Shown: positions 3,480 to 59,023 of the stretch, piece by piece | Position numbering within the stretch: position 1 is the first letter of the stretch | How the letters are laid out: each line of letters begins with the position of its first letter | From: Phaeosaccion multiseriatum | Taxonomy: Eukaryota > Protista > Ochrophyta, other classes | Direction: 5' to 3' | Length of the DNA: 64,000 nucleotides | Assembly (NCBI GenBank): GCA_965112735.1 | Contig: OZ218950.1 | Coordinates: 4,092,001-4,156,000 of the forward strand | Made by a program: the position numbers and the translations under genes | The notes under the pieces: model-generated | Seen by the model: only the letters and a program-made list of their open reading frames with translations | Database searches by the model: none | What the model was told of the DNA's origin: nothing

Positions 3480-28019
<24,540 letters not shown>

Positions 28020-44000: not shown

Positions 44001-45059
44001 TGCGGAACTAAGGTGAGTGCTTGTGCTGCGGTACCCTCCCCCTCCCCCTCCCCCACACCCCATTCCACCCCACCCCACGCACTCCGACACACACAAGTGG
44101 CTTTCTACAAATGAAAGAAAGACTCGACACAAAGACGAATGCAAAAGGCGAAATGAAGCAAAACACACACACGCACTCTTAAATGTACCTGCTGCGCCGG
44201 CTCTGTCATTCCATAGGCCGCTTCAAACGCTAAATCCGTGCACTCCAACCCCCGGGCAAACTCATTTAGCACCGCGGGGCAGGCGGGTAGGTGTGCCCTC
44301 TTGATCCTCCAGAAACGCACATTCTCCCTCCCACACGATACCAAGCGGAGGTGCTCAAAGGGGGAGAAGCGTATGCGCGTGATGGGGAACTCGCTCATCT
44401 GCTTTGCAAGGATGGCCATGCCTCTGGTGATGGCTCCTCCTCCTCCCCCTGCTGCTCCTACCCCTGCAGCTGCCGCCCCCCCCCCTCCCCTTCGGGCCGC
44501 ACAGAGCATACCGACGTCCCACACCACCACCTGCACGTTGTGCCAGTTACGTAGTGGGTACGTAGATACATGATACATCATTAGTGCATGTAGAAGGGAA
44601 GATGGACAGACAAATGATAGCAACACCTGTAACTCACTCACGTACTCACTCACTCACCTGTGTGCGTCTGTAGGCGTCGCCCCCTACCGTGCAGAGGAGG
44701 CGGTCGTCCGAGCTCCAGCACATGGACGTGATTCCGCTGCTGTGCGCCACAAAGTGGGCCACGCAGCCTGCCGAGGCCTTGGGATTAACTCCCTCCCCTC
44801 CGCCTCCTCCTGCTGTATCACCAACTGCTGCTGCCGCCGCTGCCGCTGCTGCTGCTGCCGCTGCCCCACTTACGCTCCACAGTCTGACCAGCGCCTCCGC
44901 AGCTCCTCCCTCGGGAGCCCCTCCCTGCGCAGTTGCCAGGAGTTGCCCACCGCTGCTCAGCTCCAGCAGCGTGATGGTGTCGCTGTGGCCTGTGAGAAAC
45001 ACGTGCTGGTTCTTCTTGGGCGGGGGCGGGGGGGCACTCTTCTCGTCCCCTGCGCTCTC

Positions 45060-45097
<38 letters not shown>

Positions 45098-45380
45098 TCT
45101 GCTGCTTGTCAGCCCACAGAGGATCAGTCACCAGCACCACTGTATTGTTGCTTGGGAAGGCGACGCGTCGCCCCGCTCCGGCTGCTGCTACTCCTCCAGC
45201 CGCCGCTCCTGTCCCCCCCGGTGATGCGGATGCGGATGTGGAAGGCAGCTCCTCCACCCAGGCCACGGTCCTGCCCCCGCTGTACCCGAGTACGTTGGTG
45301 AGCCGCATGCAGGGCTGGGGGAGGGAGCGGTCTGGTCGGAATGCATACTCGTTGGATGGCCGAGGCGCCTTGGTAGTAGC

Positions 45381-45417
<37 letters not shown>

Positions 45418-48277
45418 GCCCGCCCTGCCTCGTCCTTCTCATCCTTCCCAGCGCCGCCCGGGCCTTCGTCTTGGTTTCTTCCCTCCTCCTCGTTCCCCTC
45501 CTCCTCCTCGTTCGCCTCCTCCTCCTTTCCATCCTCTTTCTCATCGTGTGGTGCACGCTGCGAGGACGTTGAGGACCTCCTTCCCTCGCCTCCTCCTCCT
45601 CCTCCTCCTCCTCCTCCTCCTCCTCCTCCCTTCCCTCCCACCAGGGTGATTCCTCGCCGCCCCACACCGGCAGAAGAGGGGCCCGCTGTGGGTGCCCCTG
45701 ATCTCGCTACACTTGCGCGCCTCTCCTTCCCGACTGTCCCTCGACTGCTTGCACTTGTTACTGTTTTCATTGTCGTCGCGGGCTTCGTGGCAGGGGCATT
45801 TCTGCCCGAGGATGATGACAGGTCGGACACCACTGCCCCGGCACCCTTGCCGAGCCTTTCCGTGGCGCCTGCTGCCGACCCCAACCCGAGCTCCTCGCCC
45901 AGACTGGAGACGACGTGGAAGTGGCGCCGCTCCTATGGTAGTAGTAGTAGTAGTAGAAGGAGGAGGAGGAGGAGGAGGAGGAGGAGGAGGAGGAGGAGGA
46001 GGAGGAGGAGGAGGAGGAGGAGGAGGAGGGGGGGGAGGAGGGGGGGGGGAGGAGGAATCGAGACGAAGGACGTTCGACGAGCTATGGTTGTCAGCCACAT
46101 GTCGATGCGTGGTGCGCTGATAGAGAACCCTCTCTCTCTGTCCTGACACCCTCTCTCTCTCTGTCCTGACACCCTCTCACCCTGCCTGTCTATATGACCC
46201 CATCTCTCACTCCCAGCTTCAACAACATACAGCGATCCTCTGCGTGTCGGAAGGGCAGAAACCTCTTACGTGGAGAATCCATCTGCATCATCACCACAGC
46301 AATTTCCTTCCTTCCTTCCTTCCTTCCTTCTAACCTTGTGTGGCAAGTTGGCCCCTGCTTGGTCCACCCAGGGGTTCTGCGGTGAGCTTCTGTGCTGCCA
46401 GGAGGAGTGAGCAAGCTCTGCTGAACCGAAAGAGGAGGCGGAGGGTAGCCCCTGTCGTCCATCGCATGAAACACCAACACGAACAGAGCACAGGGGCAAG
46501 GCAAGGCGTGGCGTAGGTGCGGTGTGTGGCAACGTACAAGGACGTCAATACGCGCTGGCTACTGACCACTCACAACTGACAACTGACCTGCCACTCATAG
46601 GTCTTGCTCCACTCCTTCCTCTCGCCCCCAGCGGGAGAAGACGCGGTATTGGAAGAAGAAGCAGGAGAAGAGTCCACCCCGGGGAGACGCATGTCCTTTG
46701 GTAGAGTGCTGGGTTCGAACGCGAGGTCGGAGGTGAACACGTCCCTCACCACCATGTTGGAGCACAGCTTGACGCTCTTCAAGTGGTGGTACTGCCAGCT
46801 TGACCCTGACCCTGACCCTGACCCTGACCAGCGAGACCCTGACCCTGACCCTGCGGGGGCGGAGGAGGCAACCACCCGTCTGGCCTTCTCGTGCTCTGCG
46901 ACCATGGCAACCATGTCTATGGCGATGACGACCCAGTCGGAGCTGCGGCCCCCCTGGAAGCGCAGCGGCTGCTTGATGAGACGATCTTGAGAGAGAGGGG
47001 GGTGGGGGGGCGGGATGGGGTGCGGGAGGGCAGGGAGTATGAAGTGACGTGAGAAGCATGAACAGTGAAAGTATACCAACGAGTATCAAGAACGAGAGAG
47101 CATAAAAACTGGGGGGTGAGACGGAAAGAGAATTGAGTGGGGAGCAAAACATTGGAGCGGGTATTGAAGGGGGCAGTCCAGCTCTATGCCACTCCTCCTC
47201 CTCTTCCTCTCTCACCCGTGTGCTTGGTTTCGCTATACAAAGTACTGAAGGACATTCGCAGAGGTTGGATGCTGCTGCCTGCCCCTCCTTCCGCCACCTC
47301 CGTCTCTAGGTGGAACATCATGACTCGCTCTCTGAGGGGGCGCAGCTGCACGTAGACATATCGTCCGGTGAGATCCAGAGAACGCTGCTGCTGCGCGTGT
47401 GCTCTTTGTGTTTGGCGAGGTGGAGGGAGAGACAAGAGAGACGCAGCAAGGCCACAATGAAAGGGTGGGGAAATGAAGCGGCAGAGGGAGCTAAGTCAGA
47501 AGGGACATCAGGAGAGCGGGCTGCACAGGTGTGAATGCCTAAGCGCACATAACAACTGGGTATCTCACAAGCTCGCCCCAATACCGTTGAAGCATGGCAC
47601 GGGAGGGGAGGCGCACTACACTCACTCACCCTGGCACCGCCACGGCCCGCCCTCCAGTAAGGCCCTTGGAAGAGATGGAGCTGTGCTTGGTTGGCGGTAC
47701 CAGGCCGCTCTTCTCCTTGCCCCCGCCTGTCCCTGGGGCCAAGATGAAGTTGTTGGACGAGATGGAGCCTCGAATGCGATACACCCTCTTTGCGATACTC
47801 TTGTCCTGAGGGCGAGGGAGAAGGAGGGTAAAGTAGGGTGGTGTATTAGACAGGGTGAGATGGAGAAGATTCTTGTGCGTATCAGCAGGATACGTTTGCT
47901 CTACCGCGAAGAGAAGACCACAAGGGAACGTGGTGCCGCTTTCACCTCTCTCCTTCCAGTATCTGGTGTACATGGAAAAGCGATGTGTTCCCCTCGCTAG
48001 ATCCTTCCCCCCCTTCTCTCGGCTACAAAGGTTGGCACCCGATGGAAGTCTTCTTCCAGTGTCCCTCTCAGTGCTCTCCCCTCCGCGCACCATCCCCCCT
48101 CCCATCCCTTTCTCCCCTCCCTCATACGGCAGTTGGGAAAATACTCACCAAAATCGCCGCTACATCCCCCCCTCTGGCTGCGTCTGCGTTGTGCTTCCAT
48201 GCATCCACTCCGCAGAGCTTAAAGACAGAGACGAAGGGCTGCTGCCAGGCCGCGCTGCGGCCGCTCCTCTCGCCCAT
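38046..48277 (-). CDS. WDR90: WDR90/POC16 centriolar protein (N-terminal CFAP20/DUF667 domain + WD40 repeats), ~14 exons
   Basis: Exon 1 (48277-48149) WQQPFVSVFK...GDVAAIL joins DKSIAKRVYRIRGSISSNNFI. Also LTGRYVYVQLRP, LKSVKLCSNMVVRDVFTSD, LVSCGRENVRFWRIK, GSDDGFLRLWPLDFSDFLMEAQHE, SAGIDGSIRIWD. Some internal splice sites are approximate. Confidence 0.9.
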
Positions 48278-52991: not shown

Positions 52992-53431
52992 CTCAGTCCC
53001 AGACAATCCAGAGAAGAGCAAAGGAGGGGCTATTTGGGGTGTGAGCACCTCCGTTTGGACAAAAGCACAGGACCTGTTTATGATAATCGGATAGTTAAGT
53101 GCCATCTGAGTGAAATTGGGGACATACAGGCCCAAACAAGGTCAGGCCAAAAAAAAAAAAAAAAAAAAAAAAACGCTTTTTCATTTGTCGAACAAAACAA
53201 GCGCAGGAACAAAACGCAGGAGGCGCAAGTTTCTTCTTCTTCTCGCGCTGCCGTAGTCTAAACCAGTCGGTACATAAGCGATGTGATGATGGTCTATGGG
53301 TTTATGGCCTACTACCAAACACTGTAGGGTGGTGGTCTGTATGGCCTGCCTACATACCGTACGTGGCCGGGCCCAGGTACAATGGCAGCCCCTCAATTGA
53401 AGCGCTTTGGCAGTAAGGCAAGTCACAGACA

Positions 53432-55459
53432 TTAGGAGCCAGCGGGTAAACCATCCTTCAAAGAAGAGCCTTCGCGCACCAGCAGAAGCCGATCCAGCTC
53501 GCCTCTGAGCGCCGCGTACAGCGTCTTCCTCTCCTCGTTCATGGCTGTGACAGTCGCAATGTACTCGCACACGTCTTCGTACCTCTCCCTCCGGAACACG
53601 AACGCATCCCCATCCTCCGCCTGGCCCGAGCCCGAGGCGAGGTGGTCGCTGCTTTCCATGCAACTGTCTTGGCGGTTGCCCGCCAAGGCGAACTCCTTGG
53701 ACACTGTCTCCAGGTCCAGCTGGAAGGAACGCTGATGCGCTGCGATTACCGCGTGGGCCGCCCGCTCCTTCGCATTCAACGTCTGCTGCTGCCGCTGCTG
53801 CTGCCCCGACTCCCCTCGGCCTCCTGCCCTCGTTGTGCCCTTCGGGCCGCTCCTGGAAGAGCTGCTGCTGGTAATCCTGCGGCTCGAGTCCTTCTTCAGA
53901 AAAGCGCCCGCTGTTTTCGCCCGCCGATGCTGCTGCTGGTGGCCTCCTGCTCCTCCTCCTGCCCTGCCAATGGACGAGTCATCAGGGCTGCTTCTACTCT
54001 TCTTGGACGCAGACATGCCGGAACTTGACGAGGGGTCTTTCCGAGGAGTGAGCGGCTTGCGCACGAGCCGGCTGTGACTCATATAGTCGCTGCCCCTGCT
54101 GCTGCCGGCGTCGTTGATGCTGTCTGCTTCACTCCCTAGAGCCCCTACCGACAATCGCAAGGGAGATACCACCGCGCTTGCCGTCGAGGCACGATGGTGC
54201 TGCTGCCTGGGCTGCTGCTTTGAGAGAGACGGTCGACGGGAGGAGGAGGAAACGCGCTCCGTAGGAGCGCTAGAGAAGGAAGATATGGCGGATGCCAGAG
54301 AGTGAGTGGGCGATGATGCCGGGGCAGAAGCCCCCCCCAGCCTGGACGACGGAGGCGATGCCGATGCGAGAGCTAGCGCCTTGTCCCTCTTTCCCCCCTC
54401 ACCCCTCCGGCTGCTGCTGCTGCCTCTGGTGGTGTTCATCGTCCTTGCCGCTTGGTGGTCAGAGCTGTGGATCGGCGGAGTACACAGGCCTAGGCCACTG
54501 CGTTCCTCAGTGCTGCCAGGAGGGGTTTTGTTGCCCATGCTGTTGCGGCTGTTCACCCTCTGCAGTACGGCCTGAGACTGAGCGGATCTGCGCCGAAGGC
54601 GGTCTCTTCTATGATTGCCACTGTTCGGAGTGCTCACTGCTGCTGCTTGTGCTGTACCCGAGGAGGGCGTTGCCTTGGGGTGCTCCACTGGCCGCTGCTG
54701 CTCCTGCCCAAAGATTGGCGACACCGCCAGAGTTCTTGTACTTGTTGGCGTTTGAGAATCATCAGCGACAGCCGGGGCCAAGCGGCGTCGAGAGGGGCTC
54801 GACTGACTGCTGCTGCTCCCTGTCACACTTTCTGTCTCCTCCTCTTTGCGCACTTTCCCGTCGCGGCGGCGGCGACGGTTGCTGCTACTGCTGCTGCTGC
54901 TGTTGCCGTTCCTTGGCCTGTCCTTGAGGGCTTCCTCCGTGAGCTCCGTCGTTGCTGGCCACGCCTTTGAGGCAGTCGCTGATGACACGGGGGAGTGTCC
55001 CAGAGGCGCACGCCGCAAGACGTGGAAGGGCTGCTCTGCGGTAGAAGCGTCACATCTGTCCGTATCACCATCGCCCGCAGGCCTAAACTCGTCTTCCTGT
55101 TGCGGCGCCCTCACATCCTCGATGGGGCGGCCTGCTCCCTCAGCGGCGGGACTTCCCCTGCTGGTGGTGCTCCTGCTGCTGCCGCTGTCGCTGCTGCCGC
55201 GTCTCCGCTGATCCTTCTGCTTCTTCTTCTTCTTGCTGTCGACAGCAAGCTTAATCCTCTGGACCAAATAAAATAGCTTCTTCCTCTCCCCACTATCCTT
55301 CACCCCCAGACACTCAAAGTCCTCGAGGGTGAGGGCCGCCACTTTGGCTGGGGTGGTCACAGAGTGGGCAAGAAAGGCGGGCACGGCATAAGTGAGGCCG
55401 ATGGACTCCAGCCAGATCCGGACTTGTTCCTTCTGTCGCAAGGTCGTTCCACCCCCCAT
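53432..55459 (-). CDS. Intronless SAM-domain protein with kinesin-13-like C-terminal coiled coil but no motor domain
   Basis: N-terminal SAM (VRIWLESIGLTYAVPAF...EDFECLGVKDSGERKKLFYLVQRIK), ~490 aa Ser/Arg-rich disordered linker, and C-terminal helices (VIAAHQRSFQLDLETVSKEFAL...EYIATVTAMNEERKTLYAALRGELDRLL). First ATG at 55459. Confidence 0.75.
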   Translation of the reverse strand: MGGGTTLRQKEQVRIWLESIGLTYAVPAFLAHSVTTPAKVAALTLEDFECLGVKDSGERKKLFYLVQRIKLAVDSKKKKKQKDQRRRGSSDSGSSRSTTSRGSPAAEGAGRPIEDVRAPQQEDEFRPAGDGDTDRCDASTAEQPFHVLRRAPLGHSPVSSATASKAWPATTELTEEALKDRPRNGNSSSSSSSNRRRRRDGKVRKEEETESVTGSSSSQSSPSRRRLAPAVADDSQTPTSTRTLAVSPIFGQEQQRPVEHPKATPSSGTAQAAAVSTPNSGNHRRDRLRRRSAQSQAVLQRVNSRNSMGNKTPPGSTEERSGLGLCTPPIHSSDHQAARTMNTTRGSSSSRRGEGGKRDKALALASASPPSSRLGGASAPASSPTHSLASAISSFSSAPTERVSSSSRRPSLSKQQPRQQHHRASTASAVVSPLRLSVGALGSEADSINDAGSSRGSDYMSHSRLVRKPLTPRKDPSSSSGMSASKKSRSSPDDSSIGRAGGGAGGHQQQHRRAKTAGAFLKKDSSRRITSSSSSRSGPKGTTRAGGRGESGQQQRQQQTLNAKERAAHAVIAAHQRSFQLDLETVSKEFALAGNRQDSCMESSDHLASGSGQAEDGDAFVFRRERYEDVCEYIATVTAMNEERKTLYAALRGELDRLLLVREGSSLKDGLPAGS

Positions 55460-56310
55460 TGCTCTTGGTCCCCTCCAATCCAATCTGGGCAGCTACACGA
55501 CACCTTCCTTGGCTCTCGTCAGGACAGCTCCGGCATGAGGGCCAGCTTCCCCATCAATCCTCTCCTGATTCTCCTGTTGCTGCTCCTTCTTCTGCAGACC
55601 TGTTGCTGCTTCCGCTGAAGAGGTCAGAGAGTGAAGAGGCTTCAGTAACGTAATGTTTAAGGATGGGGTTTCCCAGCCTAAAACAACTCCATGCCAAAGT
55701 CACTGAGACTCTATCAGACTCAAACCAACAGCAGTAGGGCTCTTCTACCCGGCAGAACACTGTCGGTGGTGGAGGGAGCAAAGAACTCCAATACTAAATA
55801 CCAAACAAACACCCAAACATCATCGTTTGGATTTTTGGCCAAACAAACTGAAACTGAAACTCGCCATCAATCATCTCATGTCCCAGTGGCATATTTTTTG
55901 ACAAAAGAAAAAATTCCTCATTGCGCCCCCCCAGAGGACTATTGCTCCCTTTTGGTGCAGCCAGTGGACCTGCTCTGCTGATCTATAGACTCAGTGCAGC
56001 TGCTGTGGCAGAGAGAGCCATTACTTGCGAAGGTGGGTCACGAAAACGCCGGCGGAATAGCTCAAAAAAGACCCGAGGAGCTGGTAGGAGAGAGAGGGAA
56101 AGAAAAGGGGGAGAAGATGAAGCCAGTGGAGTGACCTAAAAATTTGAGAAGATGATGCGAGGTCTGACCCTCATTGCCCTCTTCCCCGTCGGGTGTCCGC
56201 CATTGTCGAATACCTTCCTTCAATCCTTTTGTGTGTGTTGTGACACCCTTTCCCTTTCTCTCCCTAATGCTCCCTGTGGTACAGGCGCTTCATAAGTGGC
56301 GACGAGTTCC

Positions 56311-56960
56311 ATGACGAGATGTGCGTTTCCCGCGGCGTGGGTGCTTTCCCTGCTGCTGCTCATACAGCAGCAGCAGCAGCAGCAGCAAGGGGTGGTACAG
56401 GCGAGGCGGCAAGACATCATTGACCTCATCCCTGACGACTTTGTTTGGGGCTTCGCGAACTCCGCCTTTCAAGTGGAGGGAAACCTCGAAGAAGGTCGGT
56501 CCACAAAGGCGGTGCTTTTTTTACGCTTTCCTTGCGCGTGACTCTTTCGAAGCTCTGCTCGCCGGATTCCCTCTGACACCCCGCGGCCACCCTCGTTTGC
56601 TTCCCTTCACATGTAGTGGGGGAATAGCATGTAGTCTGGCCATTCCCCCCGTTCCCCTTTCTCGGAGCTCACGATTCTCCCCTGACTCACATCAGCCTCC
56701 TCCTCCTCCTCCTCCTCCTCCTCCCGACCCTCTCTTGTCCCCTTACTGCCCTCCACCCACCGCCCTGTCCCCCCTCCTCCGCAGACGGTCGCGTACCGTC
56801 CATTTGGGACACATTCCTGGACACGAGGGGAGACGAGGTCTGCGATGCCGTAACGCCGAACATCGTCACGCCTACCACCTCTGCTGATTTCTACACCAGA
56901 TACCAGGAGGACATTGACGACATGGCAGCCATGGTGTGTGCGTGTGTGCGCGTGTGTGCG

Positions 56961-57027
<67 letters not shown>

Positions 57028-59023
57028 TCGTGTGTGTGCGTGTCAGTGTGTGTGTGTGGAGGGGAGGGTGGGTGGGTGGAGAACGCCCACCGTCTAGGCA
57101 GATACGAGAGTGGAGTAGTACGGGAATGCAATTCATCCCCTGCATTTGACGAAGGAGTTGGAGCCCCTCTTTACCCCGCCTCTCCCTGCCCCCCCCCCCC
57201 TCTGTGCCTTAAGGGTATGGATGTGTTTCGCTTCAGTATCTCGTGGGGTCGTGTGATGGGAGAAGGCAACAGCGTTAACCAAGGTGAGCCGCTCTTCCTC
57301 CTCCTCCTCCTCTTCTTCTTCTTCTTCTTCTTCTTCTTCTTCTTCTCTTTCTCTTCCTTCTCCTCTTCCTCTTCTGTGGAGCCTGCCCATGTGGCTCAAG
57401 CGTGCATGTTATGTTCTGTGCCACTTTGTACCTCCCCTCCCCCCCCCCCTTGCACTGCAATGCAGCTGGCGTGGCCCACTACGATGACGTCATCGACGCC
57501 TGCATCTCGGCCGGTCTTACCCCATACGTGACGCTGTACCACTGGGACTTGCCCGAGTGGCTCAGTGACGGCGCGGGGTATGGCTGGACCAACAACGACA
57601 TCGTTGACTTCTTCGTGGAGTATGCAGACTTGTGCTTTGAGAGCTTTGGAGACAGAGTCAAGCACTGGATTACTTTCAACGAGCCCGCTACCTTCATCCA
57701 CCTCGGGTGAGTTTGTGAGGGAGTGGAGGGAAGGAGACAGTGAGTGAGTGAGTGCGTGAGTGAGGGTGGAGGGGAGGAGGCAGTGGGAGAGTGAGTGAAT
57801 GAGTGATTAGTGAGTGAATGAGTGAAGCGAGTTAGCGAGTGGCGTCCCAGGGTCCACCCCCCTCACACCATTTCCCGTAACCTCTTTCAGATGAGCCGAA
57901 CCGGAGTGCCACACACACACACACACACACGTACACACACAACACACGTCACACCTGTTACCCTCCTTGCATCTCTATACTCTCTCTGATCCCCCCCCCT
58001 ACGTCCCTGCCGGCTTGCTTTGCCTGCCTCCCTTCCTCCCTCTCTCGCATCCATCCATCCATCCAGCTACTCAAGCGGCTTCTTCCCCCCGGGCATCAGC
58101 GGGGAGGCCATCCCTGCAGGCCACAACATGCTGTTGGCGCACGCTCATGCTGTGGACTCGCTCCGTACTAACTTCGCCTCGCAGAACGCGCAAGTGTCGC
58201 TGGTGCTGGGGAGTGACTTTTCGTACCCGCAGGACAGAACGAAAGACTCGGACTGGTGAGTGAGTGAGTGAATGCGTGCGTGAGTGAGTGCGTGAGTGAG
58301 TGAGTGAGTGAGTGAGTGAGTGAGTGAGTGAGTGAGTCGAGGGAATGCGTGATTGAGTGAGGGAGTGAGTGGGGAGGGGGGGAGAAGGGGGCGGGGCTCT
58401 AAGGGCTTTAAGTCTCAAGTTACGTGCGTGTCTCCCCTCCCCCCTTGTCTTGTACCGTAGTGTCTTACCAAACCTGACCGTACCCTGACCATACCTGCAT
58501 GTTCGATGCCAATGCTATGTACAGGACGGCTGCTGAGACCAACATGGTATGGGGACTAGGCTGGTTCGCCGACCCGCTCTACACTGGCACATACCCGCAG
58601 GTACGTTAAGGGTATTGGAGAACAACGGCCTTACGTTACATGGCAGGCAGTCGCTACGTGTGTTCTCAAGTGTAGTCTATTGACAGCCCCTTCGCTCTTC
58701 GCTTGCTTTCATTGGTACTAACCCTCTCTCTCTCTCTCTTTCTCCCTTTATCTCTTCCCTTTCTCTCTTCCCTTAGCTCATGAAGGAGAGTCTCGGCGAC
58801 AGGCTGCCCGACTTCTCCGCCGAGGAGATGGAGCTTCTCAAGGGTTCAACGGACTACTTCGCCTTGAATCATTACACTTCGCAGTACGCATATGTCGGCA
58901 CCGTGGACAATGACAGAGACGGGGAGCCGGACACCATCAGCACGCCGTACGACACGGATGGGAATGCCATCGGCCTCCAGTCAGGTGGGTGGTATGAGAA
59001 GTCGTTAGAGAGAGAAAGAACCA

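Follow-up and report, generated by a model that had tools for sequence, protein, structure and literature searches.

A motor-less SAM–linker–tail protein in the ochrophyte Phaeosaccion multiseriatum, probably descended from a SAM-bearing kinesin-13

Kinesin-13s set the length of spindle and flagellar microtubules, and little is known of how they are regulated outside animals. The subfamily that contains KIF24 (“Kinesin-13A” of Wickstead et al.) is widespread and probably ancestral, and its roles are both flagellar and mitotic (PMC2990766; PMC6068341), and the features specific to the family are a KVD finger and a KEC motif (PMC2990766). In TbKIN13-5 of Trypanosoma brucei, deletion of either the SAM domain or the C-terminal coiled coil shifts an approximate octamer to smaller oligomers in vitro, dimerisation being assigned to the SAM domain and tetramerisation to the coiled coil (PMC10863849). 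Here we describe a gene of Phaeosaccion multiseriatum whose product appears to carry a SAM head and a kinesin-13-type tail with no motor between them. It lies at 53432–55459 on the minus strand of a stretch of 64,000 nucleotides (assembly GCA_965112735.1, contig OZ218950.1, positions 4,092,001 to 4,156,000), which we call the window and to which all coordinates below refer.

Kinesin relatives that have given up motor activity are known from yeast, where Vik1 or Cik1, motor-less or ATPase-less, pairs with the true kinesin Kar3 via a coiled coil and alters its behaviour. Vik1 retains a microtubule-binding, motor-like fold, whereas in the window protein the whole globular domain is gone and any pairing would be conjectural. 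In the literature that we searched, no paper describes a kinesin-13 relative that lacks its motor, or any of the Ectocarpus accessions given below. The likeness to TbKIN13-5, a protein of a distant lineage with a working central motor that bundles microtubules, is drawn from its modules; it is the use of SAM and coiled coil as association modules there that suggests the same view of the two modules here (PMC10863849). Closest in build are the SAM-bearing kinesin-13s of the human KIF24 type, represented here by stramenopile-type proteins (P0010, P0016, P0037, P0091 and the gene on contig L001), which share with the window protein a SAM domain at the very N-terminus (51–59% identity), a long disordered linker that is rich in Ser and of comparable length, and a C-terminal tail of two helices with invariant His, Glu, Tyr and Leu. 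The window protein differs from them in having no motor (P-loop, switch motifs, KVD-type finger and KEC/KEV are all missing), in lacking an SxIP-containing linker motif and in an insert of 26–29 residues in the tail loop.

That the gene derives from a kinesin-13 is highly probable on sequence grounds. The explanation that we favour, and consider likely, is more specific: a descendant of a SAM-type (KIF24-like) kinesin-13 that lost the whole motor and kept the SAM domain, a disordered linker and the two-helix tail. A first-pass annotation of the window had already proposed a kinesin-13 paralogue that shed its motor and kept both end modules, and for SAM and tail alike the best relatives that we found are kinesin-13s. 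The idea is strengthened by the conservation of the same motor-less build across brown algae.

The open reading frame (ORF) is single and uninterrupted, just as it had first been read. In the ORF listing it spans 53432..55483 on the minus strand (683 residues if started at TTG), and its first ATG, at 55459, opens a complete coding sequence (53432..55459) of 675 codons followed by a stop at 53432–53434, with no intron required. Both ends of the protein coincide with the termini of its homologues, the SAM domain beginning at residue 10 and the C-terminus being the end of the tail. An exact-sequence look-up of the product gives no database record.

The head of the protein (residues 10–75; 55235..55432, minus strand) is, judged by its sequence, a SAM domain of the subtype found at the N-termini of kinesin-13s (KIF2/24-type). 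As the first-pass annotation had recognised, it is a SAM domain, matched by Pfam SAM_1 (PF00536; residues 10–70, E 7.5e-8, 33.1 bits where the cut-off is 23) and by SAM_2 as well; in a sequence comparison with the PDB it matches SAM domains from caskin and Eph receptors. The proposed kinship to kinesin-13 was borne out when the head was searched separately, its nearest relatives being the N-terminal SAM domains of kinesin-13 proteins. A word search with the ORF returned two proteins, each of which runs from a SAM domain (51–52% identity) through a Ser-rich linker of about 500 residues into the start of a kinesin motor. An exhaustive search of 1.84 billion representative proteins gave 129 matches at E<=1e-3, all confined to ORF residues ~13–80, and in 46 of the 54 SAM matches of at least 500 residues a kinesin motor (PF00225) follows SAM and linker; several of the remaining eight are N-terminal fragments of motor-bearing genes. 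Identity to the SAM domain of the window protein is 51% over 69 residues for the SAM and kinesin protein P0001 and 59% over 61 residues for P0010, and across relatives overall it ranges from 48 to 59%. On contig L001 two further exons of the P0001 gene encode the remainder of the motor and the C-terminal tail (they were translated and used separately, not as a joined model). The one motor tested, that of P0016, best matches KIF2C/MCAK, Klp10A and KIF2A in the PDB (E 1e-95 to 1e-91), with other kinesin families at E 1e-53 or weaker. Two clusters of motor-bearing SAM matches, P0086 and P0091, carry the Joint Genome Institute name “kinesin family member 2/24”, and the motor-bearing match P0083 comes from the chrysophyte Chromulina. 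The first six residues of the ORF (55442–55459, minus strand) read MGGGTT, which would fit an N-myristoylation-type start (Gly2 plus Ser/Thr6), as would the N-termini of 35 of 130 SAM matches, many relatives beginning MGLVSTWL.

At the other end of the protein, the last residues very probably are homologous to the kinesin-13 tail, on evidence that is moderate rather than overwhelming. Twenty motor-bearing SAM matches share a conserved C-terminal segment of ~75 residues in which His, Glu-Met, Tyr and Leu do not vary. A profile hidden Markov model (HMM) built from 18 motor-bearing tails only aligns colinearly with two pieces of the ORF (residues 563–599 and 629–665); it scores the full ORF at 11.1 bits (E 2e-5, single target) and the tail by itself at 17.4 bits. 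The first piece corresponds to tail helix 1 (residues 563–599; 53663..53773, minus strand; HMM positions 4–39), in which hhalign and the joint alignment place the retained invariant His and Glu, and the second to tail helix 2 (residues 629–667; 53459..53575, minus strand; HMM positions 43–79), likewise aligned by hhalign, with the invariant Tyr and Leu-Arg. Thus four of the five invariant residues are kept (H, E, Y and L), and the invariant Met is replaced by Phe. Aligned with a 16-sequence alignment of tails, the ORF tail gives an hhalign E of 3.4e-4 over 79 columns at a probability of 38%. Among the 1018 six-frame stop-to-stop pieces of the window the ORF is the sole match to the tail profile (E 0.021; runner-up 4.0 bits), and with two brown-algal tails added to the seed its E improves to 4e-4; the tail of P0063 gives a weak tblastn match at 53462–53620. 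The kinesin-13 tail that the first-pass annotation had proposed for this segment is supported, at moderate strength, when the tail is checked on its own.

A predicted structure of the last 120 residues consists of two long helices (ORF residues ~557–607 and ~617–667), in line with the helical C-terminus described earlier; its confidence is higher with an alignment (predicted local distance difference test, pLDDT, 83.5; predicted template modelling score, pTM, 0.65) than without one (pLDDT 59.5). Between the helices the ORF carries the tail-loop insert (residues 600–628, ~26–29 of them extra; 53576..53662, minus strand), which is found in no relative and into which the model prolongs both helices at lower confidence. 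The insert region holds one in-frame GT..AG pair (90 nucleotides) with a weak donor, and might be an unspliced intron. In six motor-bearing tails (P0016, P0091, P0115, P0025, P0104 and P0018) the extreme C-terminus is an acidic “SF(D/E)DL” motif, which the alignment places neither in the motor-less proteins nor in the ORF.

Between head and tail no motor was found, in agreement with what had been noticed at first reading. Pfam returned neither PF00225 nor anything else beyond SAM_1 and SAM_2 on the ORF, even at E<=10, and a motif scan of the ORF detected no P-loop (G..G.GK[ST]), DLAG, SSRSH, KVD or KEC; in motor-bearing relatives K/RVD stands ~51 residues ahead of the P-loop. When truncated SAM-kinesins and five full-length kinesin-13s were compared with the 64-kb window by tblastn, only the SAM domain and a weak tail match appeared, and no motor.

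The place of the motor is taken by a Ser/Arg/Ala/Gly/Pro-rich linker (residues 76–560; 53780..55234, minus strand; delimited by composition and motif scan), the long S/R-rich stretch of the first-pass annotation. Its 485 residues are 20% S, 12% R, 10% A, 9% G and 7% P, with 11% hydrophobic residues, and on this composition the linker is probably disordered; it has no Pfam match and no similarity to the linkers of relatives. A strongly conserved linker motif, approximately “RTGKxLSxIPSExxAPMSPL”, occurs in 35 SAM matches, mostly motor-bearing (P0001, P0002, P0016, P0018 and 31 more), and lies roughly 90–230 residues N-terminal of the motor where a motor is present. The SxIP within it has basic residues on either side and is of the kind through which MCAK binds EB1. 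The scan found this linker motif neither in the window ORF nor in the motor-less relatives, an absence which hints that the window protein may be more than a kinesin-13 minus its motor.

The same build without a motor occurs in brown algae and in two eukaryotes known from metagenomes, and has to be regarded as new. Three motor-less SAM matches end in a kinesin-13 tail, each as SAM, linker and tail: Choristocarpus tenellus CAM9881114.1 (P0014; tail profile E 1.7e-14), Ectocarpus sp. 13 CAM9245003.1 (P0036; E 1.3e-11) and a protein on a Tara Oceans metagenome scaffold (P0058 on L005; E 1.1e-10). A word search with the Ectocarpus tail returned 16 brown-algal proteins of 377–729 residues, among them Ectocarpus siliculosus CBN76472.1 / D8LAW3 (“expressed unknown protein”, “SAM domain-containing protein”), Ectocarpus sp. 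CCAP 1310/34 CAB1102753.1 and Nemacystus decipiens g1339.t1. The word “expressed” in the name of CBN76472.1 presumably denotes transcript support under the Ectocarpus annotation rules. These brown-algal motor-less proteins match the profile of motor-bearing tails at E 1e-10 to 3e-13, full-length kinesin-13 tails match two brown-algal loci, L002 and L003, by tblastn (1.4e-5 and 1.8e-4), kinesin-13 motors give no tblastn match there, and none of the 19 motor-less relatives examined has a kinesin motor domain.

Within the brown algae the end modules are far more alike than the linker, identities between Choristocarpus and Ectocarpus being 62% in the SAM domain, 54% in the tail and 18% in the linker, and those between Ectocarpus and Nemacystus 98%, 85% and 40%, respectively; selection therefore keeps the modules while the linker drifts. 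Taken as sequences, the motor-less SAM–linker–tail proteins look like a real protein type and not an accident.

Two of the metagenomic loci call for a comment on their gene structure. In the P0058 gene (L005:5001-7200, plus strand) an intron splits the tail just after the Glu-Met of helix 1; the gene caller stopped at this intron, and the second tail exon can be read downstream in frame 2. On a gene-dense eukaryotic metagenome contig a smaller protein (P0006, L004:2217-2750, plus strand) consists of 177 residues with a SAM domain, a short linker and a truncated tail (tail profile E 4.3e-7). We considered whether this mini-protein might be one part of a split gene, and rejected that reading: the kinesin at 4526–6079, 1.8 kb downstream on the same contig, shares only ~33% identity with kinesin-13 motors and gives no tail match, and was taken to belong to another family.

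How the window gene relates to these proteins can be said only in part. The first-pass annotation had suggested a look for motor-less orthologues; the build it described indeed exists in brown algae, and a common clade with the window gene is neither joined nor firmly separated by our data. The brown-algal D8LAW3-like proteins resemble the window protein in their SAM domain, linker of ~390–575 residues, kinesin-13-type tail, total length (557–729 residues) and want of a motor. They differ in an intron that splits the SAM domain and is absent from the window gene, in low identity to the ORF (48% in the SAM domain, 20–26% in the tail) and in their surroundings, as there is no synteny between the window gene and the Ectocarpus and Choristocarpus loci. 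A tree of SAM plus tail (142–143 columns) places the ORF near the motor-bearing P0010, without support. A tree that forces it together with the brown-algal proteins is worse by ~3.1 log-likelihood units (p-AU, from the approximately unbiased test, 0.084 and 0.092), and a single clade of all motor-less rows has p-AU 0.048 with P0058 and 0.127 without it; the P0058 row of the first tree was composed of the protein end and a 44-residue translation of the next exon (L005), and the tree was redone without that row. One loss of the motor and several are not distinguishable from such a tree, and by its sequence the window gene may be either an orthologue or the product of a separate loss.

Because SAM domain and coiled coil are the self-association modules of TbKIN13-5, the window protein might join kinesin-13 oligomers or compete with them. 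We put this forward tentatively, by analogy. Through its SAM domain and tail the protein would enter an oligomer of motor-bearing kinesin-13 and dilute the active heads or, alternatively, it would compete for the docking partners of the two modules, which a flexible, Ser/Arg-rich and probably phosphorylated linker would join. The outcome would be a tuning of microtubule depolymerisation at the spindle, centriole or flagellum by a protein that makes no microtubule contact of its own; with the SxIP-type linker motif missing, it probably does not track microtubule ends either. A broader and more doubtful proposal is that motor-less kinesin-13 derivatives form a conserved, possibly repeatedly evolved class of ochrophyte regulators; the window gene would either be one of its divergent members or have reinvented the type independently. 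Such a class would co-assemble with motor-bearing kinesin-13 and set the number of active heads per oligomer, for example during flagellar assembly or resorption or in the spindle.

If this is true, a natural, conserved protein made of nothing but the two association modules of kinesin-13 would act as an inbuilt regulator or competitor, comparable in the cytoskeleton to dominant-negative splice forms. Ectocarpus offers direct testing, since the orthologous-looking CBN76472.1 is annotated there only as “expressed unknown protein”, and the finding provides a set of so far unnamed proteins of brown algae with a name and a hypothesis.

Several results weigh against descent from a SAM-type kinesin-13 by loss of the motor. 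No close orthologue was found, there being no match at E<1e-30 among the 1.84 billion representatives, and the ORF sits on a long branch of ~1.9–2.0 changes per column. The tail similarity is weak: pairwise BLASTP between the ORF tail and that of L001 yielded no significant match, the ORF tail drew a blank in a word search, no match in the 1.84-billion-protein library runs through the tail, the hhalign probability is only the 38% given above, and the tail loop has its insert of 26–29 residues. Finally, the public sequencing runs that contain the locus are all DNA, with no RNA run among them, and the search for a motor-bearing partner gene covered the 64-kb window.

The same kinesin-13 ancestry would also suit a protein that has gone its own way, a SAM-driven, phosphorylation-regulated scaffold whose function lies apart from motor-bearing kinesin-13. 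A linker that is unlike those of kinesin-13s and has no SxIP-containing motif, a strongly diverged tail with an insert and the existence of the 177-residue SAM and tail mini-protein in another eukaryote all agree with this. We nevertheless consider it unlikely, since the conserved parts of the window protein are exactly the two modules that mediate oligomerisation in SAM-kinesin-13, and the protein has no other conserved part that could carry a new function.

Still less probable is a decaying relic, that is, a duplicated kinesin-13 gene with an internal deletion that drifts without function, as might be read from the long branch, the weakened tail motifs with the replaced invariant Met, the lack of a close orthologue and the presence of the locus in DNA runs only. 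The frame does not look like that of a gene in decay. All 675 codons are intact, including a low-complexity stretch of 485 codons that is free of stops, for which we estimate a chance probability of roughly 1e-6 at this base composition. The guanine-cytosine (GC) content of third codon positions (GC3) is well above that of second positions (GC2), with 0.71 versus 0.41 in the SAM domain and 0.78 versus 0.44 in the tail, a composition of the coding type, and the flanks of the ORF reach only 0.49–0.52 GC. Four of five invariant tail residues survive, the SAM domain is 48–59% identical to its relatives, and in brown algae the same architecture is found under module-specific conservation.

It is very improbable that the gene encodes an ordinary SAM protein with a helical C-terminus that resembles the kinesin-13 tail by chance or through a shared amphipathic-helix composition. 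Pairwise tail similarity is indeed not significant, and structure and feature searches returned nothing specific: Foldseek with the tail model found nothing in the PDB at E<=0.001 and only generic helical hairpins, a profile search of the PDB based on the tail alignment gave chance matches to coiled coils and nothing else (E>=0.019), and in the ESM Atlas the features of the tail matched only clusters without a name, at 0.90–0.91, within the stated noise. In a shuffle control none of 5000 sequences reached the score of either the ORF or the tail (maxima 7.3 and 9.2 bits, respectively), a test that is generous to helical matches because shuffling removes helical periodicity, so that the six-frame control and colinearity weigh more. 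By these, the match is colinear over both helices with the invariant positions kept, no other of the 1018 six-frame pieces exceeds 4 bits and the reversed ORF tail scores 0.6 bits; moreover, the SAM domain that the protein carries is, on independent evidence, of the kinesin-13 subtype.

A collapsed motor segment was conceivable, as a repetitive, low-complexity linker is prone to collapse by assemblers, and coverage of the linker by reads had been named at the outset as a check. Four public DNA runs, from one sample and one study, contain the locus, and every run has one contig that covers it from 53184 to 55945 or beyond and matches the window letter for letter; the “joints” among the run contigs have sides of 20–24 letters in low-complexity repeats and insert no sequence. 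The contigs of all four runs thus cross the ORF without differences or gaps, and therefore no segment is collapsed or missing, although the sample may be the assembly's own source, which makes this a check of read consistency and not an independent replication. As the frame is open all the way from SAM to tail, the 64 kb contain nothing like a motor and the neighbouring ORFs are not kinesin motors, a motor lost to misassembly or hidden in unrecognised exons is a negligible prospect.

The neighbouring ORFs are a GH1 glycosidase, a small ORF without a Pfam match and a WD40 protein. The GH1 gene (Pfam E 2e-31) is divergently placed and has introns; the small ORF lies downstream and the WD40 protein further on. 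Between the GH1 ORF pieces, probably in introns, are long (TG/CA)n and (GAA/TTC)n microsatellites at 56900–57080 and 57130–57400. The run contigs break only at these microsatellites and at a poly-T tract (53138–53183), where the short-read contigs of all four runs end; the tract has ~26 T on the minus strand and stands between the 3′ flank of the ORF and the next ORF downstream. Finally, a large ORF piece at 44646–45884 (minus strand) contains runs of Gly, of Gln and of Ala ahead of WD40 repeats, and the WD40 repeats show a faint similarity to the beta-propellers of the microtubule-associated EML proteins.

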